From positions 1 through 56,412 of the forward strand of contig RDEW01000124.1 of NCBI GenBank assembly GCA_011109175.1: DNA of 56,412 nucleotides, written 5' to 3'. This document shows, piece by piece, positions 10,394 through 44,269 of the stretch. The translations under genes and the position numbers were made by a program. This DNA is from Dicyema japonicum. Its lineage: Eukaryota; Animalia; Dicyemida. The number at the start of each line of letters is the position of its first letter. Within the stretch, counting starts at the first letter, position 1. A model generated the notes under the pieces. The model worked only from the letters and a program-made list of their open reading frames with translations. It did no database searches and had not been told where the DNA came from.

Positions 10394-10581
10394 TCAAATA
10401 GAAAAGAACTTAAGATGTTAAAAATCTTTTGGTCCTGATAGATCAATCTGTAGCAAAAATCGCACAGAAAAATATTTTTGTCATCAATCAAATAGAAAAG
10501 AACTTAAGATGTTAAAAATCTTTTGGTCCTGATAGATCAATCTGTAGCAAAAATCGCACAGAAAAATATTTTTGTCATCAA
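10394..10581. repeat. Perfect 94-bp tandem duplication
   Basis: 10394-10487 equals 10488-10581. Confidence 0.9.
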
Positions 10582-10990: not shown

Positions 10991-11236
10991 TGTCAATGTG
11001 TGTAGCCTCTTTTCAGATTCACTTAAATTTTGATTTCGCGCAAATTGACCTGTAATTAAACATTATTCAAAAAGCTATTAAACTTTTGACACAATTTCTA
11101 AACATTTTGATAGAGCTATTAAACATTGTGGCAAAGTTATTAGACATTTTTGACAATTTTATTAAATTTTATGGTAAAATTATTAAACAAATCGGAAAAC
11201 CATGTTAATTGTGTAAATGTAATTAAATTATTTTTT

Positions 11237-11430
11237 AATTTTATTTATTTAATCCAACACTTTATTTAATAAAATTAAAATTAATTATGACGACTGTTAA
11301 TCATGTAATAATTTTAATTTCTTGTGGTTACTAAATTTTATTTATTTAATCCAACACTTTATTTAATAAAATTAAAATTAATTATGACGACTGTTAATCA
11401 TGTAATAATTTTAATTTCTTGTGGTTACTA
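11237..11430. repeat. 97-bp tandem duplication private to U0
   Basis: 11237-11333 equals 11334-11430; single copy in U1 and U2. Confidence 0.9.
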
Positions 11431-11463
11431 GTATATTCATCATTTCGGTATTTAATTTTATAG

Positions 11464-12350
11464 ATGTTCAATTTTATCATCTTATACCTTCCATTTGGCA
11501 TTTTGACACAGAAAAATTGTCAAGAAATAAATCAGTTGCAATTTCTGTATTATATATTAATTATTAAGATATTTGATTAATTGTACATTTTCTGGCCTAC
11601 AAGTTGATTCTAAAGTAATATCTTTACGAACCTAATACATTACATTTGAACATGGTTTCAATTTTTCTATTATACAATCGAATGTGACGGATTTGTATTA
11701 AATATTACTTATTATAGTCACTGTTTGGAAGAAAGTTTAAAATATATAAAAAAAAATACTTTTCCATCTACTATTTATTCTTTGTTATATATATTATTAA
11801 ATTAATAGGGATTTGCGACGATGCAATTCCCTCTTATACATCGCAATTGATTTTGCCGAACATTTAACATCACTTAACGAAATGTAAATTTTTTTAATTA
11901 ATGTAGTTACTTTCCACAGAGAATAGAGGTTATTCAAGAATTTAGAGTTAGTTCCAATTATGCTGAATTAAATATGTATTTTTAATTATAATGTAGTTTG
12001 ATTGTGTGCAGGGATTCATTCGGTGTATTCAAGAATTTAGAGTTGGTTCCAATAATGCTGAATTAAATATGTATTTTTAATTATAATGTAGATTGATTGT
12101 GTGCAGGGATTCATTCGGTGATGCAGAGGCGTATGATATTATATTTATCATAGGTATAAAGCTATACGTAATCAATTCATAATTTTCCAATATAATAACA
12201 TGTATATGTTCGAAAGTAATATATTTAGACAATACAGCAAGCAGACAAGTAAAACATGTAATTAATAATGTTATTTCAGACTGCAGTGCCATTGTGAATA
12301 AGTACAATGTAATGGGCTTTTGCGGAGTTACTAACATTTTACTAACTTAA
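11464..12350 (+). CDS. Secreted BspA/LRR_5-like leucine-rich-repeat protein, copy 0 (8 exons, ~210 aa; one TAA and a 95-bp duplication as assembled)
   Basis: GT-AG introns at 11547-11568, 11695-11717, 11784-11808, 11884-11906, 11976-11996, 12131-12153 and 12258-12279. Spliced, skipping the duplication: MFNFIILYLPFGILTQKNCQEINQLQFLYLINCTFSGLQVDSKVISLRT*YITFEHGFNFSIIQSNVTDFHCLEESLKYIKKNTFPSTIYSLDLRRCNSLLYIAIDFAEHLTSLNEIYFPQRIEVIQEFRVSSNYAELNILIVCRDSFGDAEAYKAIRNQFIIFQYNNMYMFESNIFRQYSKQTSKTYCSAIVNKYNVMGFCGVTNILLT*. AATAAA at 12368. Confidence 0.8.
11931..12120. repeat. 95-bp imperfect tandem duplication inside LRR copy 0
   Basis: 11931-12025 vs 12026-12120 with about 3 mismatches; includes a 21-nt intron, so the net 74 exonic nt shift the frame. 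Confidence 0.85.
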
Positions 12351-12404
12351 TTGGTTCTTTTATCGAGAATAAAATTTGGTTTTAATTAATTCAAATTTAT
12401 TATN

Positions 12405-12815
12405 GAGAGATTACGGTACCCTCTTCCATATTTTCCCATACAGACTTCGTCGTGCCTTCTCATGCCAGCCTTGGCATTCCAGTCACCACAGATAAATATA
12501 AGTGCAGATCGATGAACTCGCATATATATATTAGATAGGATTTGATAAAACTCTTCCAACTCATCCATATTTTTGGAAACTCTGTCCATGTGTGGGGCAT
12601 ATACATTGATAACAGTCATCATAGTATTGCTTGTAGATGATAAACACAATTACATAACGGCAACACGATCACTGACTGTCCATACTTTATGCAAGCAGTT
12701 CACTAGGTTCGAGTTAATTGCAAAACCAAGACCGTTAATGTCGATTTTCTGATGGGAGTAGAAGAATCCGGTAGTTACCAATGGTTTCATCGGATCCTAA
12801 TAATTTAATGGTAAT
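12405..12815 (-). mobile_element. 5' part of the junction RTE element (U0/U1 junction)
   Basis: INVYAP...ICGDWNAK endonuclease; nearly identical to 25655-26065 and has the same junction sequence cggatcctaataatttaatggtaataattttatgg. Confidence 0.9.
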
Positions 12816-13016
12816 AATTTTATGGTAAAATTATTAAACAAATCGGAAAACCATGTTAATTGTGTAAATTTAATTAAATTATTTTTTAATTTTATTTATT
12901 TAATCCAACACTTTATTTAATAAAATTAAAATTAATTATGACGACTGTAATCATGTAATAATTTTAATTTCTTGTGGTTACTAGTATATTTATCATTTCG
13001 GTATTTAATTTTATAG

Positions 13017-13788
13017 ATGTTCAGTTTCATCATCTTATACCTTCAATTTGGCATTTTGACACAGAAAAATTGTCAAGAAATAAATCAGGTGCGATATCTG
13101 TATTATATATTAATTATTAAGATATTTGATTAACTGTACATTTTCTGGCCTACAAGTTGATTCTAAAGTAATAATTTACAAACTCACTACATCACATTTG
13201 AACATGGTTTCAATTTTTCTATTATTCGATCGAATGTGCGGATTTGTATTAAATATTACTTATTATAGTTACTGTTGGAAGAAAGTTTAAAATATGTAAT
13301 CAATAATACTTTTCCATCTACTATTTTTGCTTGTTATATATATTATTAAATTAATAGGTATTTAGAACGATGCAATTCCCTCATATACATCGCAATCATT
13401 TTGCCGAACATTTAACATCACTTACGAAATGTAAATTTTTTTAATTTATGTAGTTTCTTTCCACAGAGAATAGAGGTTATTCAAGAATTTAGAATTAGTT
13501 CCTTTGCATTAATAAGTATTTTCAATAATAATTTAGTGTTATTGTGTGCATGGATTCATTCGATGATGCAAAAGCGTATGATAGTATATTTATCATAGGT
13601 ATAAATCTATACTGATATCCATGTTCTCAATAATAACATGTATATGTTAGAAAGTAATATATTTAGACGAAACAGCAAGCAGATAAGTAAAACATGTAAT
13701 TAATAATGTTATTTCAGACTGCAGTGCCATTGCGAACAAGTACAATGTAATGGGCTTTTGCGGAGTTACTAACATTTTACTAACTTAA
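13017..13788 (+). pseudogene. Secreted LRR gene copy 1 (frameshifted as assembled)
   Basis: Same exon/intron layout (intron 1 at 13100-13121, intron 4 at 13431-13453); exon 1 and the last exon are in frame; several 1-7 nt deletions at variable sites; AATAAA at 13805. Confidence 0.75.
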
Positions 13789-14479
13789 TTGGTTCTTTTT
13801 CGGAAATAAAAATTGGTGTTAATTAATTCAAATTTATTATGATTTAAATAATTTCCTGGTTGGCCAACTGAATCACATATCTCTACTCTTGACTTTGAAA
13901 GAATAATTTTATTTAAAAAAATGATGAGGAAATGAATCGAATATTGTGGGTTGTAAAGAACGGATAGGTTTCCTTAGATTTATGAATGACGTGAGCATTA
14001 TCCCAATTAATTTATTTAGTTTTGATCCCTGTCCATATAATTGTAACTTAGTTCTTTCTCAAGATATTCAAGGAATTCAATTATATGAACACAATTTTCT
14101 TTGAGAGAGTCAAGCGTCCAAATTTCTTAAGAATATTCCTTGTCGGAGTATTTAAATGTATTGCTATAACTTCTTTTGTTATCCGGTGTCAAACTCCACG
14201 GATCAACACCCTGAAACAAAATCACACAATAAATGACAAAGGACTTTTGGATTACGAATTCTGAGTCAGTCGCGGTAGAAAATATACCTTCCCCTACAGA
14301 AACTGCTCAAGCCTTCCATAGAACGTCCACGGAATTGTATCCCGTCAATTTATACACTTCGATTTCTTTATTTCATCTCATTGACCACCAAGATGTCGGT
14401 CTTGGAGGCACTAGAAAGTAATACTAGTTCATTATGCCTTTTCCTTAGGGATCAAGCATTTACTAGAACTATTTTTAAT

Positions 14480-15140
14480 CTTTGTTTCAACATTTTGGTG
14501 ACCTTTTGAAGTAATTTTGTATTAATTTTTCCAGCCATAGCTTGATGTTCGGATGTAAGTTGGAATTAAAAATTTTTTGCGTTATGAGTTTCTTCGAAAC
14601 AGAATCATAGGCCTTCTGTAAATCGATAGATTTTAGGGCCGTCCGTAACTGTGTTCTCATGTTAAAGCTGTCAGTAGTAAACTGAGAGATAGAACCCAAA
14701 TGAATCACTGTAGAATTGTCTGTTCTGAAACCATGTTGAAATTCTGGTAGATGTAGAACAGGAGAGATGCGCATTAATACAAGCTTTTCCAGCACTTTTG
14801 ATAAAACACAAGTAATTGAGATGGGCGGTAAGAAGAGGGAACGTCTTTTGGTTTTCAAAGCTTTAGAATTGGCGTAATCAGAGAGTTTTTCCATATATTA
14901 GGTACCGTATGGTAGTTGATAGATTCGTTGTACAGTCTTGATAGATGATCCGTGCCTGAGGTCCAAGGTGTTTGAGGTGAATAATGCAAATACCGTCGGG
15001 ACCACAAGCACTACTGGGACGTAGCAAATTTAATACCTTTGTCAAATATCTAGAAAATGAGGGGAATCTATGGAGAATGAGACCGTCCCCGTGTTTACCA
15101 GTTCTGTTGGAACTTTGAGGACCCAAACGACAGACAGAAC
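14480..15140 (-). mobile_element. Jockey/I-like LINE RT remnant (U1)
   Basis: PISITCVLSKVLEKLVL...FQHGFR...SIDLQKAYDSV; DGICIIHLKHLGP. Confidence 0.85.
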
Positions 15141-15879
15141 CCGGAAAACCGGGAAACTTAGTTAGTAGTTAACGATTAACTTTTTCTAATCCGGTGATCT
15201 TGGGGTAAAAAAAAGAAGTTCTTGGTAACAATGTCTGATAAATTTTCATAGAAAACTGAAAATTTATCTTTTAACCTCCAATTCATCATGTTGTAATGAA
15301 TATGATCTACAATCTAATCGGAATAGTGAAATTAGGTCAGCTGTTAAAGTGATATACCTGTACTTTTATATACTAAGTATTCTAGCAACTGTTAATAAGT
15401 TCATTCTGTAACATCAGAAATAGAATTGAGCTCACATTTGTCTTTTTTATTTGGATATTATGATTAACTCTTATTCTGAACTAAACATATCTATGTCACC
15501 ATCAGAAGACATGAACATTTGTAAGGACGTATCAATTAACGACTACGCAAATCAGAAATCGCAATTAATAGAGGAGAGAGTTACTTGCAATTCTGATACC
15601 ATTGATGTCCTAGAAAACAAAATCCAGGTCATCCGCATATATTATTCTTAGATTGAAGTGGAAAAATTTTAGCTTCAAAAACTTATAGAATCCGATAGAA
15701 ATTATCTGCAGACATAAAAGAAGATACTTCTGGTGTGCAGTTAGATCGCTGGGAGAATTCGAAGAGTAGTTGAGAGATGTTGGAAACTGGGATCACCAAA
15801 TTATTGAGTTAATACTTTTTTGGTAGTCTAGGGATTTAAATAAATAATTAAGTAACCTAGTTGGTCGAAAGGATACTAA

Positions 15880-16440
15880 CCTAATCTTTCTTGGATCTTG
15901 ACCCTGAAGAACATAATCGTATACGGGGATTTCAATGACAGGAATCCTGTTGGTCCACTAATGGTAAATTGTATAAACGAGGGGAGTGTGTCTCGTTATA
16001 AATTTAAACCCTCGTCATTTTAAATAACCCTCTCCAACAAGTATGCACAGTTTTGAGACAAAACGAATCTAAACCACTCCCAGATATCTCCATTTGCTCT
16101 CCGAGCATCTTTCTCTAGATTTCCAGTCGGTGGTGTATAACCTTAATTCAGACCTCAACCTAATATTATGGTAGGTCGAAGATTCAATCAAAGTTGATTC
16201 GGAAAAAAGACTTTCATTAATTACAAACGCTAATTGTGATTAAAATTCAAACAAGAATTTAAATGATGCTTTTCATACTTTTCAGTCAAATATTTACGCT
16301 CGGCTGATTCTCTGAAGAAGACGAAACTCTTGGATTACAGAAACGCTGATTGGAAATTTTTTGCAACACATGTGGACATAAACTTAGCAGATTTTAACAT
16401 AATATGTATCACATTCACGATAATGCAATTTCTCATGTTA
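15880..16440 (+). mobile_element. LINE APE endonuclease remnant (U1; U2 counterpart about 29100-29600)
   Basis: IIVYGDFND, PDISICSPSI, DYRNADWKFF. Confidence 0.65.
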
Positions 16441-17847
16441 CCAGAAAATGATAATCACCATAAATAGTTCAGAGAGTGCCTAAACTATTCCAGACTCGTA
16501 CTGAAACAACAATTTATGGTATACAGCCAGGTGACACAACGCAGGTTACTTTTACACAGTAAAACTCAACTGCACCACTTACACAGAGGCATTAAACGCA
16601 TTGTATTTCTCTGTTTTTAGCTTACCAACCTAGGAATTTTTAGTTATTGGAGGTTATTAACCTGCAATGATTATCTCGTTTTTTAATTCCGCGAGTGATA
16701 CTTTGACAGAGTCTGAGATCTCTAGTCTTCCATAACAATAAGCTCAAACGCCTAGCTAGACATTCGAAGTGACTCATCTCTTAGTTACGTCACCGAAATA
16801 ACAGGTGGGCTTGTTCATATGACTTTGATGTTGTTCATGTGGTTTCTTTCGGTAGAATCATGACAAGTGGTACGGATCATTTACATGGGCTAATGATACA
16901 TGTGCAAATATACCCAATAAGTTTACCTCTGATATTAAAAATAGTTGATGATTTTTTTTCTACCATGTTCCACTGCGTGTTCATTCAAAATAGTTTATTT
17001 TAGGATGGCCTTCAACCTTCCACAGTCGTACTTGCGAAAATAACTTTAACTAAATTTCATCCAAAATCATATTTGTTTAAACTAAAGAAAATGATTCGGC
17101 CACGTGAGAAAGAGCAAATGATCTTTTTTAATTGTCATCCTCAAACTGCGTGACTCCTTAAGACAGATGAAGCCAGGATAAATCAACGACGAAACGGACA
17201 GAGTATTGTAAAAGAATTTTCGGCAAACTAAGAAACTGGGATTTTCAAAAATAATAATAACAACACCGAGACACGATTACACAAACTAACTAATCACGTG
17301 ATCCAAGTATACACTAGCAGAAAACACGTATCGGCCAAAAAACTGGATATTTGTAGTCACGACAGCACGTTCCATAGTTTATGCGTATCATGTCACCAAG
17401 AGGATTTGGTGGCTGAAATAATCCAGAAATACATCGTTCCATGATTTTGAAGGCTCTTTTTCGGCTAGCCTCGATCGTCATGGGAAATGTCGCAATATGT
17501 AAAATAATAAATAAAATAAAGATCAGGAAATCTAAAAAAACTATAATAAATTTTTAAAATTAAAGATTGAATAACATTTTAAAAATGTTAGCGCCGTCAT
17601 CTGGTTCACCATTTCTGGTGGCGCAAGATATAATCCTAAAATATATTAAAAAAGGACCATTAGTCAACAACAATCCCGAGGAGTTCCCCCCCGACAGGAT
17701 TCCTTAAAGTCCGAGCATGATTGTTGAAGGAGGCTGAGAGCAGATGCATTTTTTTCTATAACGGTGTTTTGCTCGTTCAAAAAATATAATTTAAAAGTTA
17801 ACAAGCTATTTATTGAATTGATGTAATGCACTTATTTTAAATAGTAG

Positions 17848-19200
17848 ATGGAATTAAAGCAGAATGCAACAACGATTAACGGGATATAAGTTCAGTACCC
17901 TTACATTCCGTATCACCCATAGATAACCTACAAATCCTCAGTTATTCAATGCATGATGAAATGTATGTCTTGTTTATTATGGCAGAATACAAACGGACTT
18001 TTAGAATGCCAGAGAGGAACCGGGAAAACTTTAACGCTGCCTTCCGCGACATTTCGCGGCATTACCACGTTAAAACTCAACCAGAATACTTGGAACCAGG
18101 GACGGCAATTTTGCAAAAATAAAATACACCTCTCTCACACATTCTCAACTTGTCACGTGGCAGTTGAACTCAAGAGACAATATTGGCTGATTGTATATTT
18201 GATGGGAATATAGTAGAGTGAATACGTGTTGTTGCCTTGAGAGACCAAATATGCATTCATCCTTGCCGACAAACGCGTCGGTCAACATTTACTGACTCAA
18301 AGTGCACGTGCACGTACTTCAACTAGTCGAAGGTAAAATTTTTTGTCAAAAATATTTTATTTATTTTTTTCAAATATCAGTTATTTTTAAAATTATCATT
18401 GTTGAGATATTTTTTTAAATTTTATTTAAATTAATCGTTTTAATCATTTCTTATTTTGCAAAAGTAAAATACGAGGATCTGGCTGAATGACATAATCGAT
18501 ATCATACAGAAGGGAACTGAACTGACGTATTTAAATTTAGTAATACACAGATGCTGCCATATTACCTGGCTAAAAATGAAGGAAAGTGCCTACATAATTT
18601 TTTATTCTTATAACTTCTAATCGACTCACGTGTTTTATGATCTGCTAATGTCTAGTTGAGATCGAAACGTGGCGTTGAATTCAAAGGAAATGTCCTAATA
18701 TTTTAAGAAGTTTATAATTTGGTTGATTTATAAAAAAGAGTGTTTGTAAGAAAATTCAGTCGTTTAACTTTCCTTCATTAATTTTTGCTGTGGCTATTAT
18801 TGAGTAGACTACATTTATGGAATTCTAGAGCGAATACAGGTTGAGAATGTAAACTCTGAGTAGTTGATTACCGATTGGGTATGGGATATATTACTACTTA
18901 GCCATACTGCGAATGAAATGATGCGGTTAAATTGGAAGATATTTAATTGACATTTTTTCTAGTGTTATTTTCACGGTCAATTGTTCAGTTTATAATAGCA
19001 TTAATTGACGAAAAGCGACCTCGATTCGGAGAAACCATCACCTTGGATTTTGGAACACCCTCAATTTTTGAACACTTGGTAGGATCGGTACTAAAGTGGA
19101 AAAGACCCTATCAGGTAAAAAACCTCGATTTAACAAAATTAACATAAAAAATCTTCTCTCCCGAGGGACATCCGGGTAAACCTGGCTCGTCTAATATTTG
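17848..19200 (+). pseudogene. RTEL1: RTEL1-like Fe-S DEAH helicase 5' fragment, unprocessed pseudogene (U1)
   Basis: INGI*VQYPYIPY...VIQCMM | 23-nt intron 17963-17985 | NTNGLLECQRGTGKTLTL; KIKYTSLTHSQL; RDQICIHP; ELT | 24-nt intron 18527-18550 | C.PYYLAK..AYIIFYSYNF; FKGNVLIF*EVYN (dead DEAH). Weaker GKPGS match near 19175. Confidence 0.88.
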
Positions 19201-19989
19201 GTGACCACCCCTCTTTACCAACTACGTACGTAAACTGGATGATGTTAAAGATCCTCTGTTCATTTTGCAACCTTTCCTAATTGATAGAAAACTACCTTTT
19301 TGAATGTCCTTGAATTATTAACTGTTCGTCTAAAATACCAAGACTGACCGATCTATGAGAGCGACCGTCATTCCCGCATTCTATTTAATAGCCGCTGGCC
19401 TTTTACAAGTTAATGAGGATGAGGTTACTTAACTAACTATACAAAAATAAATGGCATTTATCCACTCTGAAATATTTACTGAGTTGGATATATTGAACAA
19501 TTCTTATTTAGACACTACATGAGTTAATGAGATATTAACATGCAATCCTCCTCATTAAAATTATCCGCAATCGAGGACACTGCAATAAAGTTTATTGGAC
19601 CAGACACAAAATCTAGCCAGTTAAAATTTCTTTATCGAATTACAACGGAGACTCTTAAATGCGGATAGTTTACCGACTTGCCCTCTATTCCATACACTAT
19701 CGAAATATTTACAATCATACATATATTTTTGAGCCGATGTCATGTCCAACTTGAAGAGCTGTTCAGGATTCTCGACCCCGCCGGACTCGTCCCTGTGATC
19801 ACTTAGTTAGATGAGAACTTTTATTTCTTTCTCTTTGACCCTGTGATCCTAAAAGCAAAATGATAATAATAACTTGTGAGAATTTAATCTTTCTTCCCAA
19901 ACGAGGTGTAGAAATATTATGTGGGTTTTGAAAGAAATTGCGTAAACTAGACATATTTTGATTAAGCTTAAATTTGCAATGAAATAACA

Positions 19990-20300
19990 AACTCACCAAA
20001 TTTCTGGGGTGAGAAATTTTGTTCAGTTAATAGTAACCCAAATTCGATCTCTAATATTTTGCGACTTAAATTTGGGGGTAAAATATAATTTCCAATCCAA
20101 AAATCCTCTTTTTTTCGAGCTAGTGAACATCGAATTCAGCTTCTCCACCACTCGACCTCACTCACACAATTAATTCTACGTGAATGTCCTAATAATGTTA
20201 GCACTGTCTCAGAATTTAATATAAGTCTAGGAACTCATTTACACGTGGTGCCACTAAGGTCGTCAAGATTTTCATTTAAGACTAGTTTTTCAGTCAGTCA
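19990..20300 (-). pseudogene. Possible WD40-repeat remnant (U2 counterpart about 33200-33500)
   Basis: TVLTLLGHSRRINCV followed by decayed SS..FW-like residues; nothing else recognised. Confidence 0.3.
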
Positions 20301-20939
20301 AGCATGCAGGAGAGTATTCTGGCCTCCAAAATCGGGTTGTTAGCAATTCCCTGACATCTTGAATTACTGGTTTTACAAAATGAACATTTAGAATACTTAA
20401 ACAGTAGATCTGGCAAACAAAACTAATTTTGATCGTTCTTGCAGTACATAAAACCAACTTTCAGTTAATGAGGCAAAAATTCGACGTCCCCTTATAGTCT
20501 GGAATCACTTAGAAAAATCTTTTCATTTGGTCGGCAATTACAATACTTAACTCACAAGGATGATCCTGTGACTAATCTTCTACCCTTCAATATTTGAAAC
20601 GGCAAGGTTTTCGTATTTTTTCTCGAAATATTCCGTAGTGTGATATCTGCTGGTGTTCTTGAATTTTTTCATAAATTGTTACCAAACAGTTTTTTACACG
20701 CTTCTGTGATTATACCTATGACTAGAGCCAGTTTTGTCAATAAAATCAAAAATTAAATGTTCTTAAAAATTTTTAAACTTATAAAAAATTTATTAATTTT
20801 TTGATTTTTATTTTTAAATAAAATAATAGCGTTGATCAATTATCATTATATCTACTGTGGTATGATATCCACTGTTGAGGTATAACTTGCATTTATTATA
20901 CGGCTGAAAAAGTTTTTGTTTTTTTAGACGAAACCATTA

Positions 20940-21470
20940 TCGGGAGCAGAAATACACAGTGTTCGAGTGCGTGTTGGAAAATGTATGTCGCGAGAATTCG
21001 TGACGACAGTGGCCACACATCGAGAAGACACCCTCCCTCCAGTATTGTTCGCTGTATACCTTGAATCGATTCTACGAGATCTGAAATATTAAGGGACTAT
21101 ATTATGGAAATTCTTACGCCGATGATGTTGAATTTATCTCGAGTACAAAGATGCAATCATACTTCAACTGGAGGTAGCACCCTCGCGCCTGGCTAAATGG
21201 TGTGTATTTATGAGCGCTTCGAAGATAGATGTCGTCAATACAAGGGGATGGAACCAGCAGTACCAAAAAACAGGAGGAAGACCATAAAACAGTCTTGCTT
21301 CTTGGGGTCTCCAAAGTCAATGCCAGAAGAAATTTGTTATTTACGGTGACCATGCAAAAGCTTTTCGAAAGGATGGATCTAAAGGCGTCCGACTCAGATT
21401 GTATGAGGCAACCGTGAAACTAACTCTGGAACATGGGGAATCTCGAAAACCGAGGATAAAAATTCGACTA
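20940..21470 (+). mobile_element. RTE LINE RT remnant (U1; U2 counterpart about 34140-34690)
   Basis: LPPVLFAVYLESILRDL...YADDVEFIS. Confidence 0.8.
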
Positions 21471-21913
21471 CTTACAGATATGAATCAACTTCGGTCTTGG
21501 GATTGAAATTGCTAGTAAGGGTGATGTATGGTACAAAAGATGCTCCTCCTGAGCTCTGCTTATTTCTTAATAATTTGTATTAATGCCATGACAAATTTTA
21601 TGAAAGTGTACAACTGAGATAAATAACTTTTTTTATATGCAAACTATATTTCTAAACTAAGATAAAAAACTATTTTTTAATATGCAAACTATATTCTTTA
21701 TAAAACAATAAAAATTAAAGCATTAAAATTACTAGTTAAAGCAATATGAAAACCAGTTTTCTAGGTATCAGAACAAAGGGTAATCCCAACCAACACGGGG
21801 TACCAGAAGCCATTGCTGTGATCGCAGCCACAACCATTAAATGTCATTAAATCAGATTTAGAAATACAGCATACCTTATGAAAGATTTAATTGCAAGAGA
21901 CTCTTTTATAATA

Positions 21914-22110
21914 TACAGGGTGACTTAGTGGTTAGGTGTCGGGCTTAAGTGGCTTAGGCTATTGGTTCGAATTTCGCTGCTGTTCACCTGGTGGAAGGTT
22001 CCACGCATCTACGATGCAGAAAGGGTTTGACGAGTGACGCCGTCATCAGTGAATACTCACTGCGGAACTGGATAGTCTAGAAAGGACACTCACACAAGAA
22101 AAAGAAAAAA
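21914..22110 (+). mobile_element. tRNA-derived SINE
   Basis: A box TGACTTAGTGG at 21921-21931, B box GGTTCGAATTT at 21964-21974, ~130-nt body, A-rich tail; homologous to 37491-37697 and 53632-53803. Confidence 0.8.
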
Positions 22111-22399
22111 GTAGAACTTCAAAAGAAGTGAAGTTCTACGATTAGTTAAAATTAACTGTTCTTTACTTTTATGGTTATCTTAAATTCTTAAAACTCAGGT
22201 TTCGCAATATATGAAGCGATAGCTAAAAACTGACACACATAATGAAATGTCCTCGAAATAATTACTTTTCCCATTAGCCACACCTTATCGGCATGTTAGT
22301 TTCTGTCCTTACGTAATTTAAATCAAGAACCATTATTCACATAATCTCCGTCAAAATGTTCGTTTCGGGATTGTGGCGAGTAACGGAGAATTTTAATTA

Positions 22400-23230
22400 C
22401 GTATTCACATTACTTCGAGGATTTTCCACTAACCTGATAATCCTACAAACCTGGAACATCGCATCTTAGAAGAGAAAAAATTCAATGCAGTAGTTAACTC
22501 GTTGCAGTTTTTGTGAGCCTTAATTAGTAGCTTTTTTAGATTATTGACGTTTGTGATCGGCATATAGAAAGGTTCTCTATCCTCATAGGATCTGGGAGTA
22601 ATAATACCTGAGCAAATTGGCAATAAGTAAAAAGATGTTTAAATAATGCTTTTCTTTTACATAAAAATGCATTGTGTACGAATTTGATACTGTCTTTCGC
22701 AGTTGTTGTCCACCACTTTTTATCCATAAATTCTGTAAACATCTTGCTACTACAAACCAGTTAAATCCTCGGAGGTTTTAACGTATTCGAATTCTACGGT
22801 TTATGCGTATGAATCAGAGACTATTATACTATTTTATATTAACATTGGCCAAGTGTTGGGTCGGAATCGAGCTCAAATATTGGAATCAACTTACTTATGA
22901 CTCATGTTTGTTGGTCATATTGTCAATGAAGTAGTCGAACAATTGGAAAGTCAACTCTGTAGTCAGGAAGCTATTCCTATATATCTTAGTCTTACTTCAT
23001 CCTGGGACAGACAACTTCCAAACAGCCAAACGAAAGAAAACACAAACTATATCTCGTAGAGTTTATTTGAACAGTCCAGGGAGTGATTTGGGATTAGCAT
23101 AATTTCCAGTAAAATGCAGAACATTTAAAGAATCAATTTGAGGTTGAACCTAGACGTGTACAATATCTGAGATTGGAGTAATCTTCTTGAATCGGGTCCT
23201 CGGAATTTCCAAAAAACTCAGGACATATTT
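22400..23230 (-). mobile_element. Very degraded Ty3/gypsy pol remnant (U1; continues past the U2 end to about 38930)
   Basis: KWWTTTAKDSIKFVHNAFLCKRK resembles the integrase Zn-finger WWPxMxKDVxxFVxxCxxC; VIKLDM*GVF at about 38880-38910 resembles RT KLDLxxAF. Confidence 0.4.
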
Positions 23231-26050
23231 AAGTTAGTTAGTTAAGAGCTCTTTCGCGTGGCCCTAATAGGGGTTCGCTTGAGCCATGTTTTGCAGCCAT
23301 TTTCCTCGCCATCCTCGCCCACGCCATCTTGTTCCTGGCCCTCATTCGAACATCATCCAGATCGTCCGCTGTCACCAATTTACGACTATTTTGTTCGTAG
23401 TCATCTTTTAAGCAGGTTGGAAGTGTGTTTCTTGGTCTGCCTCGAAATCCGCGACTTCCGGCGTAGTAGAAATATTCTTCCATTATTCTGTTACATGGCG
23501 TAGTCGGGTCCAGTCTGAGGATATGTCCAAATAGTCGCCATCTCGATAAAATAACATCGGTGCTGAGTGGTCTGGATTTACATCGTGAATATAGATTTTC
23601 ATTTGAGATTTTTCTCGGCCAAAAAATTCCAATCAACATGCGGAGTTGGTTCCTGTGAAAAGTATCTAGCTTCTCTAAATCAATTTTAGAACATGCCCAT
23701 GTTCCGGAATTGTATAGCAAAATTTGTTAAAAAAACGTGTCGTTTAGTCTGACACGAAGTTTCAGTGATACATGTTTTTTCCTTATCCAAATTTGGTACA
23801 TTTTTTTGAAGTATATGGTGCCAGCATTTTCCTTCGACAAATATCCTCAGCATCACCTAGCAGTGAGCCAAGTTTTTGGTATGTCTCCAGCACTCATCGT
23901 TCCTTGATTCTGCTCGTTCGACTCGTGTATAATCAGTTTTTTTAATGTTTATGCGTAAATCCTAATTCTTAAAAATACGTTCGGCTTGAAGTAAAATTTG
24001 GTCAAGTATTTCTTGGTCGGTAGACACAAAGTCTACATCATCCGCATAAATTAACTCTGTTATGTCCCGGTATTTAGGACCTATGACATTTCTCAATTCC
24101 TTGAGCGCAGCTTCGAGGTAAACAATAAATATAATTGGGGACAAGGAATCTCCTTGTGGAGTGCCCATGTTGGTACTGAAACTCTTCGAATGCTTTGTTC
24201 CTATTCTCACGGATAGGTCAGTTTCAGAAAGTAATAAACTTATTAGTCTCAGGCAGTCCTCGTCAAGCAGTTCCTTTAGAACAATCATGAGTTTTTCTCT
24301 ATTGATGCTGTCAAAAGCCTTCGTTAGATCAATTCCTAGGATGTAGATTACTTTCGTGTATTTTTGACATATTGATGTGAGCCATCGATGACTCCACACA
24401 ATATCTGAGTTGATCTTCCACTTCTAACCCACTTTGACTTAGGGAAAGGTATTTTTCCACTGGCTCTCGTATACGGTTAAGCACTATGATCGATAAGGTT
24501 TTCCTGATAACTGACAATAGAATAATAGGTCTTAGTCCGTCCAACGACCCTTCTTTTTTCCCAGGTTTATGTATTGGAATTAAGACTCCATGTCCCAAAG
24601 GAAGTGGACAGTGAAGTTCCATCGACTCATTTAAGATATTCGTGATTATATTCCCAACAGTAACCGGGGCATGTTTTAGTAACTCACCCGGAATGCCATC
24701 ATAACCAGCCGACCGATTTCCCTTTAGATGCATAAATGCATCGGTTACTTCCTTTATTGTAATTTTGTTTGTAAGGGGTCTCGGATATCCAATAAATTTA
24801 GGTACATTCATCCCTTCAGATTTAAACAACGACTCGAAGTGTCTAGCAATATAATTTGCTTTATCCTCAGGGTTTTGAAGATATTGACCTTCGTCGTCAC
24901 AGACTTTCAGTGGTTTCTTTGCAGTTCCTCGTGTAAGTAGTCTAACAGCAGAGAACATTCGTCTTCCATACTGACAGTTTTCGATTTCAGTTGCTTTATC
25001 GTCCAAATATTTGTGCCAAAGGATATTTGATCGTCTTCTTATCAGATGCGATATTTGATTGCGTTTTCTCCTTAATGCACATTTATTCGAATTTGAACTT
25101 CCCAGTTTCGAACGTATTTCTTTCTGCTGCTCAGACAATTCTCGAATTAAGGGGTCATGAATCATTCGTCTATTTTGGTCTTTTTCCTGGTATCCAACAG
25201 TCTCTATCGCCGACAGTTTTAGAATATCCAAGATCTTCCCGAGTCAGTCGAGGGGGTGCCACTGGGTTCAACTCCACGTAAACGTTTAGAGACATTTTGT
25301 TGTATCTCTTTTGCCAAGTGTCAAAAGTCAACATTTCCACAGCCAAACGTTTATTTAGAGGTGTGCTTTTCCTCTTGACTGCCTCAATTCCGTAGTATCG
25401 TTTGAGATTTAATCTGGCCACCGTTAGCTTATGGTCACCGTCAGTAGTGGTTCCTCCATAACTCCTAGAGTCAGACAGAAGTCTCTTCAAGGAGATAGGG
25501 CAGATAGTGTAGTCTATTTGGTTGAATATGCACGTATGTTCGTCTTTGGATCTTCTGGTGCCGACCCAAGTAGTTTTATGCTTTGCAGGGTGTTCAAAAG
25601 TGGTGTTGCAAAGGTACAAATCTGATGAATTACAAAAATCAACAAGTGATTGTCCAAAGAGATTTCGATCCCCTGCCATGTTTTCCCATACAGACTTCGT
25701 TATGTCTTCTCAAGCCAGCTTTAGCATTCCAATCACCACAGATAAATATAAGTGCAGATCGATGAACTCGCATATATGTATTCGATAGGATTTGATAAAA
25801 CTCTTCCAACTCATCCATATTTTTGGAAACTCTGTCCATGTGTGGGGCATATACATTGATAACAGTCATCATAGTATTGTTGTAGATGATAAACACAATT
25901 GCATAACGGCAACACGATCACTGACTGTCCATACTTTATGCAAGCAGTTCACTAGGTTCGAGTTAATTGCAAAACCAAGACCGTAATGTCGATTTTCTGA
26001 TGGGAGTAGAAGAATCCGGTAGTTACCAAATTGGTTTCATCGGATCCTAA
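23231..26050 (-). mobile_element. Nearly full-length, 5'-truncated RTE-clade non-LTR retrotransposon (APE endonuclease + RT), frameshifted
   Basis: GLGFAI, INVYAP, GDWNAK, NQIDY, GDHKL; RPIILLS, DLTKAFD, TPQGDSLSP, YADD; LYNSGTW, RWRLFGH, RGRPR; (TAAC)n tail at 23231-23244. Confidence 0.95.
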
Positions 26051-26266
26051 TAATTTAATGGTAATAATTTTATGGTAAAATTATTAAACAAATCGGAAAA
26101 CCATGTTAATTGTGTAAATTTAATTAAATTATTTTTTAATTTTATTTATTTAATCTAACATTTTATTTAATAAAATTAAAATTAATTATGACGACTGTAA
26201 TCATGTAATAATTTTAATTTCTTGTGGTTACTAGTATATTCATCATTTCGGTATTTAATCTTATAG

Positions 26267-27049
26267 ATGTTCAGTTTCATCATCTTTTACCTTCCATTTG
26301 GCATTTTGACACAGAAAAATTGTCAAGAAATAAATCAGGTGCGATCTCTGTATTATATATTAATTATTAAGATATTTGATTAATTGTACATTTTCTGGCC
26401 TACAAGTTGATTCTAAAGTAATATTTTACTAATCAATACATCACATTTGAACATGGTTTCAATTTTTCTATTATGCATCGAAAGTGGAGGATTTGTATTA
26501 AATATTACTTATTATAGTTACTGTTGGAAGAAAGTTTAAAATATGTAATCAATAATACTTTTCCATCTACTATTTATACTTGTTATATATATTATTAAAT
26601 TAATAGGTATTTGCGACGATGCAATTCCCTCATATACATCGCAATTGATTTTGCTATACATTTAACATCTCTTACGAAATGTAAATTTTTTTAATTAATG
26701 TAGTTCTTTCCACAGAGAATAGAGGTTATTCAAGAATTTAGAACTAGTTTTTGGTTTATTAATTGAGTATTTTTAATAATAATGTAGTGTCATTGTGTGC
26801 AGGGATTCATTCGGTGATGCAGAGGCGTATGATATTATATTTATCATAGGTACACATCACGTCTACCTCATCAATACATGTTTCTCAAAAATAATAATAT
26901 GTATATGTTCGAAAGTAATATATTTAGACGAAACAGCAAGCAGACAAGTAAAACATGTAATTAATAATGTTATTTCAGACTGCAGTGCCATTGCGAACAA
27001 GTACAATGTAATGGGCTTTTGCGGAGTTACTAACATTTTACTAACTTAA
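26267..27049 (+). pseudogene. Secreted LRR gene copy 2 (frameshifted as assembled)
   Basis: Introns at 26350-26371, 26495-26517 and 26582-26606; last two exons in frame (YTSRLPHQYMFLKNNNMYMFESNIFRRNSKQTSKTYCSAIANKYNVMGFCGVTNILLT*); small deletions and a TAA upstream. Confidence 0.75.
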
Positions 27050-27725
27050 TCGGTTCTTTTTCGGAAATAAAAATTGGTGTTAATTAATTCAAATTTATTA
27101 TGATTTAAATAATTTCCTGGTTGGCCAACTGAATCACACATCTCTACTCTTGACTCGGAAAGAATAATTTTATTTAAAAAAACGATGAGGAAATGAATCG
27201 AAGATGGTGGGTTGTAAAGAACGGATAGGTTTCCTTAGATTTATGAATGACGTGAGCATTATCCCAATTAATTTATTTAGTTTTGATCTCTGTCCATATA
27301 ATTGGAACTTAATTCTTTCTCAAGATATTCAAGGAATTCAATTATATGAACACAATTGTTTTTGAGAGAGTCAAGCGTCCAAATTTCTTAAGAATATTCC
27401 TTGTCGGAGTATTTAAATGTATTGCTATAACTTCTTTTGTTATCCGGTGTCAAACTCCACGGATCAACACCCTGAAACAAAATCACACAATAAATGACAA
27501 AGGACTTTTGGATTACGAATTCTGAGGCAGTCGCGGTAGAAAATATACCTTCCCCTACAGAAACTGCTCAAGCCTTCCATAAAACGTCCACGGAATTTAT
27601 CCCGTCAATTTATACACTTCGATTTCTTTATTTCATCTCATTGACCACCAAGATGTCGGTCTTGGAGGCACTAGAAAGTAATACTAGGGATCAAGCATTT
27701 ACTAGCACTATTTTTAATCTTTGTT

Positions 27726-28380
27726 TCAACATTTTGGTGACCTTTTGAAGTAATTTTGTATTAATTTTTCCAGCCATAGCTTGATGTTCGGATGTAAGTT
27801 GGAATTAAAAATCTTTTGAGTTAGGAGTTTCCTCGTAACAGAATCAAAGGTCTTCTGTATGTCGATAGATACTAGGGCCGTCCGTAAATGTGTTCTCACG
27901 TTGAAGCCGTCAGTAGTAAACTGAGAGATGGAACCCAAATGAGTCGTTGTAGAACGGTCTGTTCTGAAGCCATGTCTAAATTGTGGTAGATGTAGATCAG
28001 GAGAAATGCACATTAATACAAGCTTTTCCAGCACTTTTGATAAAACACAAGTAATTGAGACGGGGCGGTAAGAAGAGGGAACGTCTTTTGGTTTTCAAGG
28101 CTTAAGAATTGGCGTAATCAGGAAATTTTTCCATATATTAAATAGTGTATGGTAGTTGATTGATTCGTTGTACAGTCTTGATAGATGATCCGTGCCTGAG
28201 GTCCAAGGTGTTTGAGGTGAATAATGCAAACACGTCGGGACCACAAGCACGACTGGGACGTAGCAATTTAATAGCTTTGTCAAATATCTAGAAAATGAGA
28301 AGAATCTATGGAGAATGAGACCGTCCCCGTGTTTACCAGTTCTGTTGGAACTTTGAGGACCCGAACGAGAGCCAAAACAC
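27726..28380 (-). mobile_element. Jockey/I-like LINE RT remnant (U2)
   Basis: HGFRTDRSTTTHL...SIDIQKTFDSV; counterpart of 14480-15140. Confidence 0.85.
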
Positions 28381-31047
28381 GGAAAACCGGGATATTTAGT
28401 TAGTAGTTAACTTTTAACTATTTCTAATCTGGTGATCTTGTAGGTAAAAAAAGAGAATTCTTGGAAACAATGTCTGATAAACTTTCATAGAAAACTGAAA
28501 ATTTATCTTTTAACCTCCAATTCATCATGTTGTAATGAATATGATCTACAATCTAATCGGAGTAGTGAAATTAGGTCAGCTGTTAAAGTGATATACCTGT
28601 ACTTTTCTATAACTAAGTATTTTAGCAACTGTTAATAAGTCATTCTGTAACATCAGAAATAGAATTGAGCTCACATTTGTCTTTTTTTATTTGGATATTA
28701 TGATTAACTCTTATTCTGAACTAAACATATCTATGTCACTATCAGAAGACATGAACATTTGTAAGGACGTATCAATTAAAGACTACGCAAATCAGAAATC
28801 GCAATTAATAGAGGAGAGAGTTACTTGCAATTCTGATACCATTGATGTCCTAGAAAACAAAATCCAGGTCATCCGCATATATTATTCTTAGATTGAAGTG
28901 GAAAAATTTTAGCTTCCAAAAACTTATAGAATCCGATAGAAATTATCTGCAGACATAAAAGAAGATACTTCTGGTGTGCAGTTAGATCGCTGGGAGAATT
29001 CGAAGAGTATTCAAGACATGTTGGAGGCTGGGATCACCAAATTATTGAGTTAATACTTTTTTGGTAGTCTATGGTTTTAAACAAATAATTAAGTAACCTA
29101 GTTGCTCCAAAGGATACTAACCTGATCTTTCTTGGATCTTGACCTGAAGAACATAATCGTATACGGGGATTTCAATGACAGGAATCCTGTTGGTCCACTA
29201 ATGGTAAATTGTATAAACGAGGGGAGTGTGTCTCGTTATAAATTTAAACCCTCGTCATTTTAAATAACCCTCTCCAACAAGTATGCACAGTTTTGAGACA
29301 AAACGAATCTAAACCACTCCCAGATATCTCCATTTGCTCTCCGAGCATCTTTCTCTAGATTTCCAGTCGGTGGTGTATAACCTTAATTCAGACCTCAACC
29401 TAATATTATGGTAGGTCGAAGATTCAATCAAAGTTGATTCGGAAAAAAGACTTTCATTAATTACAAACGCTAATTGTGATTAAAATTCAAACAAGAATTT
29501 AAATGATGCTTTTCATACTTTTCAGTCAAATATTTACGCTCGGCTGATTCTCTGAAGAAGACGAAACTCTTGGATTACAGAAACGCTAATTGGAAATAAT
29601 ATGTATCACATTCACGATAATGCAATTTCCTATGTTACCAGGAAATGATAATCACCATAAATAGTTCAGAGAGTGCCTAACACTATTCCATACTCGTACT
29701 GAAACAACAATTTATGGTATACAGCCAGGTGACACAACGCGGGTTACTTACACACAGTAAAACTCAACTGCACCACTTACACAGAAGCATTAAACGCAAT
29801 GTATTTCTCTGTTTTTAGCTCACCAACCTAGGAATTCCTTGTAATTGGAGGTTATTAACCTGCAATGATTATCTCGTTTTTTAATTCCGCGAGTGAAATT
29901 TTGACAGAGTCTGAGATCTCTAGTCTTCCATAACAATAAGCTTAAACGCCTAGCTAGACATTCGAAGTGACTTATCTCTTAGTTACGTCACGAAAATAAC
30001 AGGTGGGCTTGTTCATATGACTTTGATGTTGTTCATGTGGTTTCTTTCGGTAGAATCATGACAAGTGGTACGGATCATTTACATGGGCTAATGATACATG
30101 TGCAAATATACCCAATAAGTTTACCTCTGATATTAAAAATAGTTGATGATTTTTTTTCTACCATGTTCCACTGCGTGTTCATTCAAAATAGTTTATTTTA
30201 GGATGGCCTTCAACCTTCCACAGTCGTACTTGCGAAAATAACTTTAACTAAATTTCATCCAAAATCATATTTGTTTAAACTAAAGAAAATGATTCGGCCA
30301 CGTGAGAAAGAGCAAATGATCTTTTTTAATTGTCATCCTTAAACTGCGTGACTCCTTAAGACAGATGAAGCCAGGATAAATCAACGACGAAACGGACAAA
30401 GTATTGTAAAAGAATTTTCGGCAAACTAAGAAACTGGGATTTTCAAAAATAAAAATAACAACACCGAGACACGATTACACAAACTAACTAATCACGTGAT
30501 CCAAGTATACACTAGCAGAAAACACGTATCGGCCAAAAAACTGGATATTTGTAGTCACGACAGCACGTTCCATAGTTTATGCGTATCATGTCACCAAGAG
30601 GATTTGGTGGCTGAAATAATCCAGAAATACATCGTTCCATGATTTTGGAGGCTCTTTTTCGGCTAGCCTCGATCGTCATGGGAAATGTCGCAATATGTAA
30701 AATAATAAATAAAATAAAGATCAGGAAATCTAAAAAAAACTATAATAAATTTTTAAAATTAAAGATTGAATAACATTTTAAAAATGTTAGCGCCGTCATC
30801 TGGTTCACCATTTCTGGTGGCGCAAGATATAATCCTAAAATATATTAAAAAAGGACCATTAGTCAACAACCATCCCGAGGAGTTCCCCCCCGACAGGACT
30901 TCCTTAAAGTCCGAGCATGATTGTTGAAGGAGGCTGAGAGCAGATGCATTTTTTTCTATAACGGTGTTTTGCTCGTTCAAAAAATATAATTTAAAAGTTA
31001 ACAAGCTATTTATTGAATTGATGTAATGCATTTATTTTAAATAGTAG

Positions 31048-32400
31048 ATGGAATAAAAGCAGAATGCAACAACGATTAACGGGATATAAGTGCAGTACCC
31101 TTACATTCCGTATCACCCATAGATAACCTACAAATCCTCAGTTATTCAATGCATGATGAAATGTATGTCTTGTTTATTATGGCAGAATACAAACGGACTT
31201 TTAGAATGCCAGAGAGGAAACGGGAAAACTTTAACGCTGCCTTCCGCGACATTTCGCGGCATTACCACGTTAAAACTCAACCAGAATATTTGGAACCAGG
31301 GGACGGCAATTTTGCAAAAATAAAATACACCTCTCTCACACATTCTCAACTTGTCACGTGGCAGTTGAACTCAAGAGACAATATTGGCTGATTGTATATT
31401 TGATGGAATATAGTAGAGTGAATACGTGTTGTTGCCTTGAGAGACCAAATATGCATTCATCCTTGCCGACAACGCGTCGGTCAACATTTACTGACTCAAA
31501 GTGCACGTGCACGTACTTCAACTAGTCGAAGGTACATTTTTTGTCAAAATATTTTATTTATTTTTTTCAAATATCAGTTATTTTTAAAATTATCATTGTT
31601 GAGATATTTTTTTTTAATTTTATTTAAATTAATCGTTTTAATCATTTCTTATTTTGCAAAAGTAAAATACGAGGATCTGGCTGAATGAACATAATCGATA
31701 TCATACAGAAGGGAACTGAACTGACGTATTTAAATTTAGTAATACATAGATGCTGCCATATTACCTAGCTAAAAATGAAGGAAAGTGCCCACATAATTTT
31801 TTATTCTTATAACTTCTAATAGACTCACGTGTTTTATGATCTGCTAATGTCTAGTTGAGATCGAAACGTGGCGTTGAAATCAAAGGAAATGTCCTAATAT
31901 TTTAAGAAGTTTATAATTTGGTTGTTTTATAAAAAGAGTGTTTGTAAGAAAATTCAGTCGTTTAACTTTCCTTCATTAATTTTTGCTGTGGTTATTATTG
32001 AGTAGACTACATTTATGGAATTCTAGAGCGAATACAGGTAGAGAATGTAAACTCTGAGTTGTTGATTACCGATTGGGTATGGGATATATTACTACTTAGC
32101 CATACTGCGAGTGAAATGATGCGGTTAAATTAGAAGATATTTAATGGACATTTTTTCTAGTGTTATTTTCACGGGTCAATTGTTCAGTTTATAATATCTT
32201 TAATTGACGAAAAGCGACCTCGATTCGGAGAAACCCTCACCTTGGTTTTTGGAACACCCTCAATTTTTGAACACTTGGTAGGATCGGTATAGAAGTGGAA
32301 AAGACTCTATTAGGTAAAACCTCGATTTGAACAAATTTAACATAAAAAATCCTTTCTCCTGTGGGACATCCGGGTAAACCTGACTCGTCTAATATTTGGT
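31048..32400 (+). pseudogene. RTEL1: RTEL1-like fragment (U2)
   Basis: Introns at 31163-31185 and 31726-31749; same inactivating stops as the U1 copy. Confidence 0.88.
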
Positions 32401-34991
32401 GACCACCTCTCTTTACCAACACGTACGTAAACTGGATAATGTTAAAGATCCTCTGTTTTTTTTGCAACTTTTCCTAGTTGATAGAAAACCACATTTTTGA
32501 ATGTTTTGAATTATTAACTGTTCGTCTAAAATACCAAGACTGACCGATCTATGAGAGCGACCGTCATTCCTGCATTCTATTTAATAGCCGCTGGCCTTTT
32601 ACAAGTTAATTAGGATGAGGTTACTTAACTAACTATACAAAAATAAATGACATTTATCCACTCTGAGATATTTGACTGAGTTGGATCTATTGAACAATTG
32701 TATTTTAGACACTACATGAGTTAATGAGATATTAACATGCGATCCTCCTCATTAAAATTATCCGCAATCGAGGACACTGCAATAAAGTTTATTGGACCAG
32801 ACACAAAATCTAGCCATTTAAAATTTCTTAATCGAATTACAACGGAGACTCTTAAATGCGGATAGTTTACCGACTTGCCCTCTATTCCATACACTATCGA
32901 AATATTTACAATCATACATATATTTTTGAGCCGATGTCATGTCCAACTTGAAGAGCTGTTCAGGATTCTCGACCCCGCCGGACTCGTCCTTTCCTTTGTC
33001 GGTCTGTAATCACTTAGTTAGATGAAAAATTTTATTTCTTTCTCTTTGACCCTGTGATCCTAAAAGCAAAATGATAATAATTACCTGTGAAAATTGAATC
33101 TTTCTTCCCAAACGAGGTGTAGAAATATTTTGTGGGTTTTGAAAGAAATTGCGTAAACTAGACATATTTTGATTAAGCTTAAATTTGCAATGAAATAACA
33201 AACTCACCAAATTTCTGGGGTGAGAAATTTTGTTCAGTTAATAGTAACCCAAATTCGATCTCTAATATTTTGCGACTTAAATTTGGGGGTAAAATATAAT
33301 TTCCAATCCAAAAATCCTCTTTTTTTCGAGCTAGTGAACATCGAATTCAGCTTCTCCACTACTCGACCTCACTCACACAATTAATTCTACGTGAATGTCC
33401 TAATAATGTTAGCACTGTCTCAGAATTTAATATAAGTCTAGGAACTCATTTACACGTGGTGCCACTAAGGTCGTCAAGATTTTCATTTAAGACTAGTTTT
33501 TCAGTCAGTCAAGCATGCAGGAGAGTATTCTGGCCTTCAAAATCGGGTTTTTAGCAATTCCCTGACATCTTGAATTACTGGTTTTACAAAATGAACATTT
33601 AGAATACTTAAACAGTAGATCTGGCAAACAAAACTAATTTTGATCGTTCTTGCAGTACATAAAACCAACTTTCAGTTAATGAGGCAAAAATTCGACGTCC
33701 CCTTATAGTCCGGAATCACTTAGAACAATCTCTTCATTTGGTCGGCAATTACAATACTTAACTCACAAGGATGATCCTGTGACTAATCTTCTACCCTTCA
33801 ATATTTGAGGCGGGAAGGTTTTCGTATTTTTTCTCGAAATATTCCGTAGTGTGATATCTGCTGGTGTTCTAGAATCTTTTCTTAAATTGTTACCAAACAG
33901 TTTCCTACACGCCTCTGTGATTATACCTATGACTAGGGCCAGTTTTGTCAATAAAATCAAAAATTAAATGTTCTTTAAAATTTTTTAAACTTATAAAAAA
34001 TTTATTAATTTTATTGATTTTTATTTGTTAAATAAAATAATAGCGTTGATCAATTATCATTATATCTACTGTGGTATGATATCCACTGTTGAGGTATAAC
34101 TTGCATTTATTATACGGCTGAAAAAGTTTTTGTTTTTTTAGACGAAACCATTATCGGGAGCAGAAATACACAGTGTTCGAGTGCGTGTTGGAAAATGTAT
34201 GTCGCGAGAATTCGTGACGACAGTGGCCACACATCGAGAAGACACCCTCCCTCCAGTATTGTTCGCTGTATACCTTGAATCGATTCTACGAGATCTGAAA
34301 TATTACAGGGACTATATTATGGAAATTCTCTATGCCGATGATGTTGAATTTATCTCGAGTACAAAGATGCAATCATACTTCAACTGGAGGTAGCACCCTC
34401 GCGCCTGGCTAAATGGTGTGTATTTATGAGCGCTTCGAAGACAGATGTCGTCAAGTACAAGGGGATGGAACCAGCAGTACCAAAAAACAGGAGGAAGACC
34501 ATAAAACTGTTTTGCTTCTTGGGGACTCTAAAGTCAATGCCAGAAGGAATTTGTTATCTACGGTGACCATGCAAAAGCTTTTCGAAAGGATAGATTTAAA
34601 GGCGTCCGACTCAGATTGTATGAGGCTACCATGAAACTAACTCTGGAACATGGGGAATCTCGAAAACCGTGGATAAAAATTCGACTACTTACAGATGAGT
34701 AAACTTCGTTATCTTGGGATTGAAATTGCTAGTAAGGGGTGATGTATGGTACAAAAGATGCTCCTCCGGAGCTCTGCTTATTTTTTAATAATTTGTATTA
34801 ATGCCATGACTAATTTTATGAATGTGTACAACTGAGATAAATAACTTTTTTATATGCAAACTATATTTCTAAACTAAGATAAAAACTATTTTTTAATATG
34901 CAAACTATATTTCTAAACAGTATTTTTTTGTTCAGTTCCGTACCAATTGGTATATGGCCCACCGGTTTGGGACAACTTGTTTACACTAATA

Positions 34992-44100: not shown

Positions 44101-44269
44101 TAAATAATATTTTATTGTTAATAAATTTTTGATAATAAAAAAAAAATTATTAGAATTATTTTCACTAATTTATAATCACTTCCATTGATGCTAAAATATT
44201 TGTTATCAAAAAAGTTCGATTGGTTATATTTTATATTTATTATTAACTTCTGAATTTCTTAATCTATTT

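Follow-up and report, generated by a model that had tools for sequence, protein, structure and literature searches.

Predicted micro-intron gene copies with variable exons and conserved introns in duplicated DNA of Dicyema japonicum

What kind of gene, if any, lies hidden in the AT-rich repeated DNA between positions 11464 and 27049 of contig RDEW01000124.1 of the dicyemid Dicyema japonicum (assembly GCA_011109175.1), where open reading frame (ORF) scanning reveals none? We analyzed the whole stretch of 56,412 nt, referred to below as the window, which is animal DNA rich in transposable elements, with a GC content of about 0.35 and three N gaps. The published D. japonicum assembly measures 67.5 Mb with a GC content of 36.7%, 49% repeats including numerous long interspersed nuclear elements (LINEs), and 4.1% gaps (PMC6736024), and was made by combining Platanus and Falcon (PacBio RS II) contigs and applying GapCloser; the window agrees with it in GC content, N gaps, and LINE load. 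An initial annotation of this DNA had proposed a tandem family of micro-intron genes encoding a small secreted protein with leucine-rich repeats (LRRs) of the BspA type. Our analysis points to a micro-intron gene family whose assembled copies vary far more in their exons than in their introns, and lends no support to the LRR identity of the predicted product.

Three copies, here called U0, U1, and U2, lie on the plus strand and have in common an ATG, a series of AT-rich GT..AG segments of 21-25 nt, and a stop codon. U0 spans positions 11464-12350 from ATG (11464) to TAA, U1 spans 13017-13788 (ATG at 13017), and U2 spans 26267-27049 (ATG at 26267). The region directly upstream is also common to all three, with 11165-11463 (plus strand) being 98-99% identical to 12816-13016 and 26066-26266. 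When introns are picked by composition alone, the predicted exons of U0 measure 83, 126, 66, 75, 69, 74, 39, 54, 29, and 71 nt and lie at 11464-11546, 11569-11694, 11718-11783, 11809-11883, 11907-11975, 11997-12070 (the 74-nt exon, a chimeric extra), 12092-12130, 12154-12207, 12229-12257, and 12280-12350. The nine predicted introns between them occupy 11547-11568 (22 nt), 11695-11717 (23 nt), 11784-11808 (25 nt), 11884-11906 (23 nt), 11976-11996 (21 nt), 12071-12091 (21 nt, a duplicate), 12131-12153 (23 nt), 12208-12228 (21 nt, optional because it keeps the frame), and 12258-12279 (22 nt). In U1, introns are predicted at 13100-13121, 13246-13268, 13333-13357, 13431-13453, 13516-13536, 13576-13598, 13646-13666, and 13696-13717, giving exons of 83, 124, 64, 73, 62, 39, 47, and 29 nt and a last one of about 71 nt, with single-base gaps relative to U0. 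In U2, they are predicted at 26350-26371, 26495-26517, 26582-26606, 26681-26703, 26767-26787, 26827-26849, 26907-26927, and 26957-26978, giving exons of 83, 123, 64, 74, 63, 39, 57, and 29 nt, again with a last one of about 71 nt. In all copies an AATAAA stands 18 nt past the stop, at 12368-12373 (plus strand) for U0, as the initial annotation had indicated, at 13805 for U1, and at 27066 for U2. The initial annotation is supported in seeing a multi-copy micro-intron gene, but U0 as assembled contains nine intron-like segments of 21-25 nt, not seven.

The predicted introns all start with GTA or GTT, end in AG, and have a GC content of about 0.14, against 0.30 in the exons. Counting GT..AG segments of 21-25 nt with a GC content of at most 0.2, we found 8, 7, and 7 on the plus strand of U0, U1, and U2, respectively, at matching positions. 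Dinucleotide shuffles of the same stretches contain 1.2-1.5 such segments, with 0 of 500 shuffles reaching the observed count, and the minus strand at the three copies holds 0-1. The enrichment is about six-fold and confined to one strand. Across the window, intron-like segments cluster on the plus strand at exactly U0, U1, and U2. The introns of D. japonicum and of myxobolids are known to be very short and AT-rich, with the form GTa...AG (PMC13644364), and the predicted introns are of this type in their length (within 20-27 nt), in their terminal signals (5' GTa and 3' AG), and in their AT-richness. Compared with the micro-intron genes of D. japonicum and myxobolid myxozoans (PMC13644364, PMC6736024), the copies agree in the 21-25 nt length, the reduced GTa...AG signals, and the AT-richness, and show no difference at the intron level; they are ordinary for such a genome. 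We regard the predicted family of micro-intron genes, present here in three copies, as real.

One could object that there is no gene here and that AT-rich repeated DNA simply offers chance GT..AG pairs and open stretches. A GC content of 0.27 does make such pairs, as well as "proteins" rich in I, L, F, and N, easy to find, and neither a homologue nor a domain was found for the product. We nevertheless consider this highly improbable, given the shuffle counts and the near-empty opposite strand just described, and given the coding signals of U0. The six unduplicated internal exons of U0 (126, 66, 75, 69, 39, and 54 nt) are all multiples of three, for which the chance is (1/3)^6 = 0.0014, and of eight introns seven fall in phase 2; this symmetry and constancy of phase are lost in U1 and U2 via single-base gaps. 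The first six exons of U0 form one reading frame containing one TAA, and the longest spliced open run reaches 112 codons, where the null model gives 60 on average (P = 0.008). Freedom in choosing splice sites does not account for this run, since stops cannot simply be spliced around. The first ATG is preceded by an in-frame stop, and the N-terminus is hydrophobic in all copies (mean Kyte-Doolittle value of 1.8-2.0 over residues 2-15). In our reading, the gene coded for protein until recently. Its product would be about 203-210 aa long and rich in Ile, Leu, Phe, and Asn, encoded by an ancestral gene of about nine exons. The hydrophobic N-terminus, the NxS/T sites (three), and the seven Cys listed by the initial annotation are all present, and because the start resembles a signal peptide the product is probably secreted or surface-bound; a role in host interaction is a guess.

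The variability of exon patches is real, and we consider it a solid result that is more interesting than the LRR claim. Exons diverge by 9.9-10.5% in all three pairs of copies, whereas introns diverge by 0.6-3.3%, the flanks by about 3%, and the rest of the 10.8-kb duplicate that carries U1 and U2 by 3.0%. The difference between exons and introns yields Fisher p values from 0.002 to 1e-6, and for U1 and U2 the comparison of exons with introns plus flanks gives p = 7e-6. Base composition was rejected as the cause of the conserved introns because the exon excess persists at A/T sites (8-9.5%) and at G/C sites (13%) taken separately, the rest of the duplicate showing 2.3% and 3.2% at these two classes. 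The variable patches lie in the middle and at the end of exon 2, at the junction of exons 3 and 4, in the middle of exon 4, at the end of exon 5, and in exon 8. Conservation of exon 1 and of the last two exons equals that of the introns, so that the backbone of introns, first exon, last two exons, and flanks retains 97-99% identity. Each run of variable sites is private to a single copy, and as such sites are about equally numerous per copy (40, 39, and 30), the exons are equidistant among the copies, even though the introns of U0 and U2 differ at only 1 of 180 sites. Synonymous and non-synonymous differences are close to each other (pS 0.09-0.12, pN 0.07-0.09), with dN/dS at 0.6-1.1 and not above 1. 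The diversification proposed by the initial annotation is supported insofar as exons vary far more than introns. Selection could have caused the pattern, as could conversion in patches with other family members as donors, or the mixing of reads during assembly; the raised divergence at 14.4-15.4 kb, in another multi-copy stretch of the duplicate, is a caution that repeats here do exchange sequence or become mixed.

If these are genes for a secreted protein, does the protein belong to the BspA-like family? According to the initial annotation, the product would be a TpLRR/LRR_5 solenoid, unusual in animals, acting as a diversifying host-interaction protein. There are features that invite this reading: a 21-residue stretch in exon 5 fits seven of eight TpLRR positions, LxxLxLxxC motifs span two exon junctions, exons of 22-25 codons would suit one repeat per exon, and the strict motif LxxLxLxx[CN] has 4 matches where 1.25 are expected (P = 0.03; a duplication in U0 causes one match to be counted twice). 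An hmmscan against Pfam, including PF13306, with the central 121 residues, the stop being written as X, and with seven single exons returned no family at E<=10, HMMER filters discarding most matches above E of about 0.1. A word-seeded search of 5.8 billion proteins, limited in sensitivity, produced 2 candidates and 0 at E<=0.01, and a repeat-unit profile built from the exact exon translations retrieved chance matches only, and no LRR protein, from all PDB sequences. We also scored the TpLRR pattern LxxIxIxxxVxxIxxxAFxxC in units of about 23 residues, with chains at a spacing of 20-27 residues; residue shuffles do as well in their best window, in how many good windows they contain, and in the tandem-chain score (P 0.58-0.62). 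The canonical LRR pattern, LxxLxLxx(N/C)xL every 20-30 residues, fares similarly (P = 0.19 for the extended pattern and 0.63 for the tandem chain), so that these patterns as a group stay at the shuffle level (P about 0.2-0.6). Such patterns arise by chance because about 35% of the residues are I, L, F, or V. With the Pfam, PDB profile, protein search, and TpLRR pattern tests all negative, we find membership in LRR_5 unsupported and hold the BspA-like reading to be very improbable, and the argument of a family unusual in animals and the question of horizontal origin fall away with it. The predicted product resembles BspA-like/TpLRR proteins (PF13306) in being hydrophobic and repeat-like, in a probable secreted or surface location in a host-associated organism, and in one exon that looks like a TpLRR unit, but hidden Markov model, profile, and pattern tests for membership were all negative. 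An LRR-like fold, as distinct from membership in LRR_5, is possible.

The copies are set within and beside a larger duplication. In a self-comparison of the window, a 10.8-kb segment appears twice, at 12406-23230 and 25658-38812, with 95-97% identity and starts 13.25 kb apart. The first copy of the segment contains U1 and differs from the second by 3.0% overall; the second contains U2 and is split by a 2.3-kb insertion at 34911-37250. They are separated by 2.4 kb of a LINE fragment at 23231-25657 on the minus strand, with a reverse-transcriptase domain (RVT_1) at 23965-24399, and a second RVT_1 fragment lies at 14490-14894, also on the minus strand. The unit of U0 is only a head copy of 1.24 kb (11165-12403), which stops at a single N (12404), a contig join that cuts the unit 53 nt past the U0 stop. 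Immediately past this N, the sequence corresponds to the beginning of the duplicated segment, so a third unit may have existed in the genome, with U0 as its head and its body lost in the gap. In each unit of 13 kb, the gene takes up less than 1 kb. The term "tandem family" suits this layout, with the amendment that the repeated unit is the 10.8-kb segment, present twice with a LINE fragment between, and that U0 contributes a head only. Divergence along the duplicate is very uneven: it does not exceed about 1% at 15.9-18.4 kb, but amounts to 5-7% both at 14.4-15.4 kb (the reverse-transcriptase fragment) and at 18.9-19.4 kb. This points to exchange between repeats in patches, or to repeats having been mixed during assembly.

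What, then, are U0, U1, and U2? With moderate confidence, we take them to be paralogues of recent origin, all three derived from a micro-intron gene that is lineage-specific (an orphan) in an animal parasite with tiny introns. Behind the copies would stand a tandem segmental duplication of 13.25 kb, which took LINE DNA along, plus one further head copy. Nearly every internal exon would be a multiple of three entered in phase 2, so that exons could be duplicated, lost, or skipped without loss of the frame, and in the middle exons short stretches would have been replaced by copy-private sequence. The replacement may have come about through patchwise exchange with other family members, or through accelerated change confined to exons, as in the segment switch of venom genes.

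Several results weigh against this reading. We searched exhaustively from the ATG through every choice of GT-AG introns of 18-30 nt, and no copy yields an open frame under any such splicing, with maximal spliced frames of 150 nt in U0, 288 nt in U1, and 144 nt in U2; the initial annotation had likewise stated that each assembled copy carries a lesion. The open runs of U1 (P = 0.05) and U2 (P = 0.16) are not significant, the dN/dS values are those of sequence without purifying selection, and codon positions carry no composition signal in the inferred frame (chi2 6.7, P = 0.32), where the Sox ORF of the same window gives 38. The lack of any Pfam family or homologue counts here as well, although it is a weak blank, as the searched collection lacks the proteins of this genome itself: of four ORFs of the window looked up exactly among 15 billion proteins, none was present. 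Lastly, some of the lesions may be assembly errors.

Two breaks are found in U0. An in-frame TAA in exon 2 (11633-11635, plus strand), within a variable patch, ends the frame, and a 95-bp tandem duplication at 11931-12120 on the plus strand (2.0 copies, 96% identical) brings in the extra 74-nt exon and a 21-nt intron, through which the frame is lost. The 633-nt spliced frame claimed earlier for U0 does not survive these findings: the underlying sum, 83+126+66+75+69+39+104+71, passes over both the TAA and the 74-nt exon and also counts the 21-nt segment at 12208-12228 as exon. The 95-bp duplication may be real or an assembly artefact. Within 1.8 kb there are three two-copy tandem duplications, at 10394-10581 (94 bp), 11237-11430 (97 bp), and 11931-12120 (95 bp), two of them 100% identical (the 97-bp one, upstream of U0, is perfect) and one 96% identical, and the 94-97 bp size approximates one exon-plus-intron module (90-98 nt). 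These could be gap-closing artefacts or genuine duplications of module size. The clustering of the three, together with the merging of Platanus and Falcon contigs and the use of GapCloser, is the reason for suspecting artefacts among the lesions. As assembled, the three copies are either pseudogenes or partly mis-assembled copies, and the working members of the family, if any, lie elsewhere.

Could the copies be dead relics and nothing more, of a gene that died before the 13.25-kb duplication, with the patches as by-products of ectopic conversion or assembly mixing? The at least five single-base gaps in exons 2-4 that U1 and U2 have in common relative to U0, the early ends of all copies, a dN/dS of about 1, and the lack of codon periodicity would all fit, as would the raised divergence in another multi-copy part (the reverse-transcriptase fragment, 14406-15406, 6.6%). 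Neutral decay should, however, strike introns and flanks equally, and the exons exceed them 3- to 17-fold; in addition, the length changes of exon 2, of exons 3 and 4 together, of exon 5, and of exon 8 in U2 are all multiples of three. We therefore see the relic explanation as unlikely, if deserving of serious weight. A more daring variant would have the broken copies act as silent cassettes from which exon patches are copied into an expressed copy, an antigenic-variation-like, conversion-driven source of diversity in an animal parasite of about 30 cells, with the near-invariant micro-introns and end exons serving as homology anchors. This we regard as very unlikely.

For the reading as recent paralogues of an orphan gene, the significance depends on transcription. 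If transcribed, the copies would represent an unannotated, fast-diversifying family of secreted proteins in dicyemids, of which our literature searches turned up no report, and the "conserved introns, hypervariable exons" pattern of venom genes would recur in a genome with introns of 21-25 nt. For now, we are left with broken local copies and a predicted protein that has neither a recognizable fold nor recognizable relatives, and the BspA claim does not hold. In practice, the locus is useful as a starting point for counting the family across the genome with intron-aware methods.

Elsewhere in the window, the 2.3-kb insertion at 34911-37250 is confined to the second segment copy and contains a hAT-like element with ORF pieces at 35456-36928 on the plus strand, for which Pfam searches on the separate pieces gave no match. 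Taking out two AT-rich GT..AG segments lengthens one ORF of this element to 230 codons, which serves as a rough control for the introns. AT-rich GT..AG segments of 23-27 nt are kept in both units of the duplicate at 16979-18406 and 30177-31936 (plus strand), its least diverged part, and a second micro-intron gene sought in this part (16.9-18.4 kb and 30.2-31.9 kb) did not emerge as a spliced ORF. An intronless Sox-like ORF of 329 codons lies at 50400-51389 on the plus strand, with a clear HMG box (PF00505, E 9e-24) and, in contrast to the micro-intron gene, strong codon periodicity. A GC-rich island (0.45-0.51) at 43231-46087 has overlapping ORFs on both strands that resemble decayed copies, in a pair, of one element. 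Scanning the window for Rfam families and for tRNA genes returned nothing.

Among known systems, the closest parallel in the pattern of change comes from snake venom. Genes for venom phospholipases A2 (PLA2), serine proteases, and three-finger toxins show accelerated exon evolution and "accelerated segment switch in exons" (ASSET), and in the PLA2 genes the introns and the signal exon are conserved while all codon positions change alike (PMC7285919). In U0, U1, and U2, the introns and the predicted signal exon are likewise the more conserved parts, synonymous and non-synonymous rates are similar, and from one tandem paralogue to the next, short stretches of exon have been replaced as a whole. 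The venom genes differ in having neither sequence nor fold relation to the copies described here, which are broken and equipped with introns of 21-25 nt, so that their conserved "introns" total only about 180 nt.

Schistosome micro-exon genes (MEGs) start with a signal peptide and consist mostly of small symmetrical exons (PMC4350168), and dicyemids have been reported to have platyhelminth affinities. The likeness extends to the parasitic lifestyle, the signal-peptide-like start, the small symmetrical exons, a mature part changing faster than the (here predicted) signal part, and surroundings rich in transposable elements; in contrast, the exons here (39-126 nt) lie at or above the MEG range, and the introns of MEGs are not micro-introns. 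The bicycle effector genes of aphids have about 17 exons, a CYC motif, small internal exons in phase 2, and a secretion signal (PMC9168663). The copies on this contig belong to an unrelated lineage, have 9-10 exons rather than about 17, and show no C-Y-C in their read-through translation, but they share with the bicycle genes the many small internal exons, nearly all in phase 2, the N-terminal secretion signal (predicted here), and a divergence so rapid that gene structure outlives sequence similarity.

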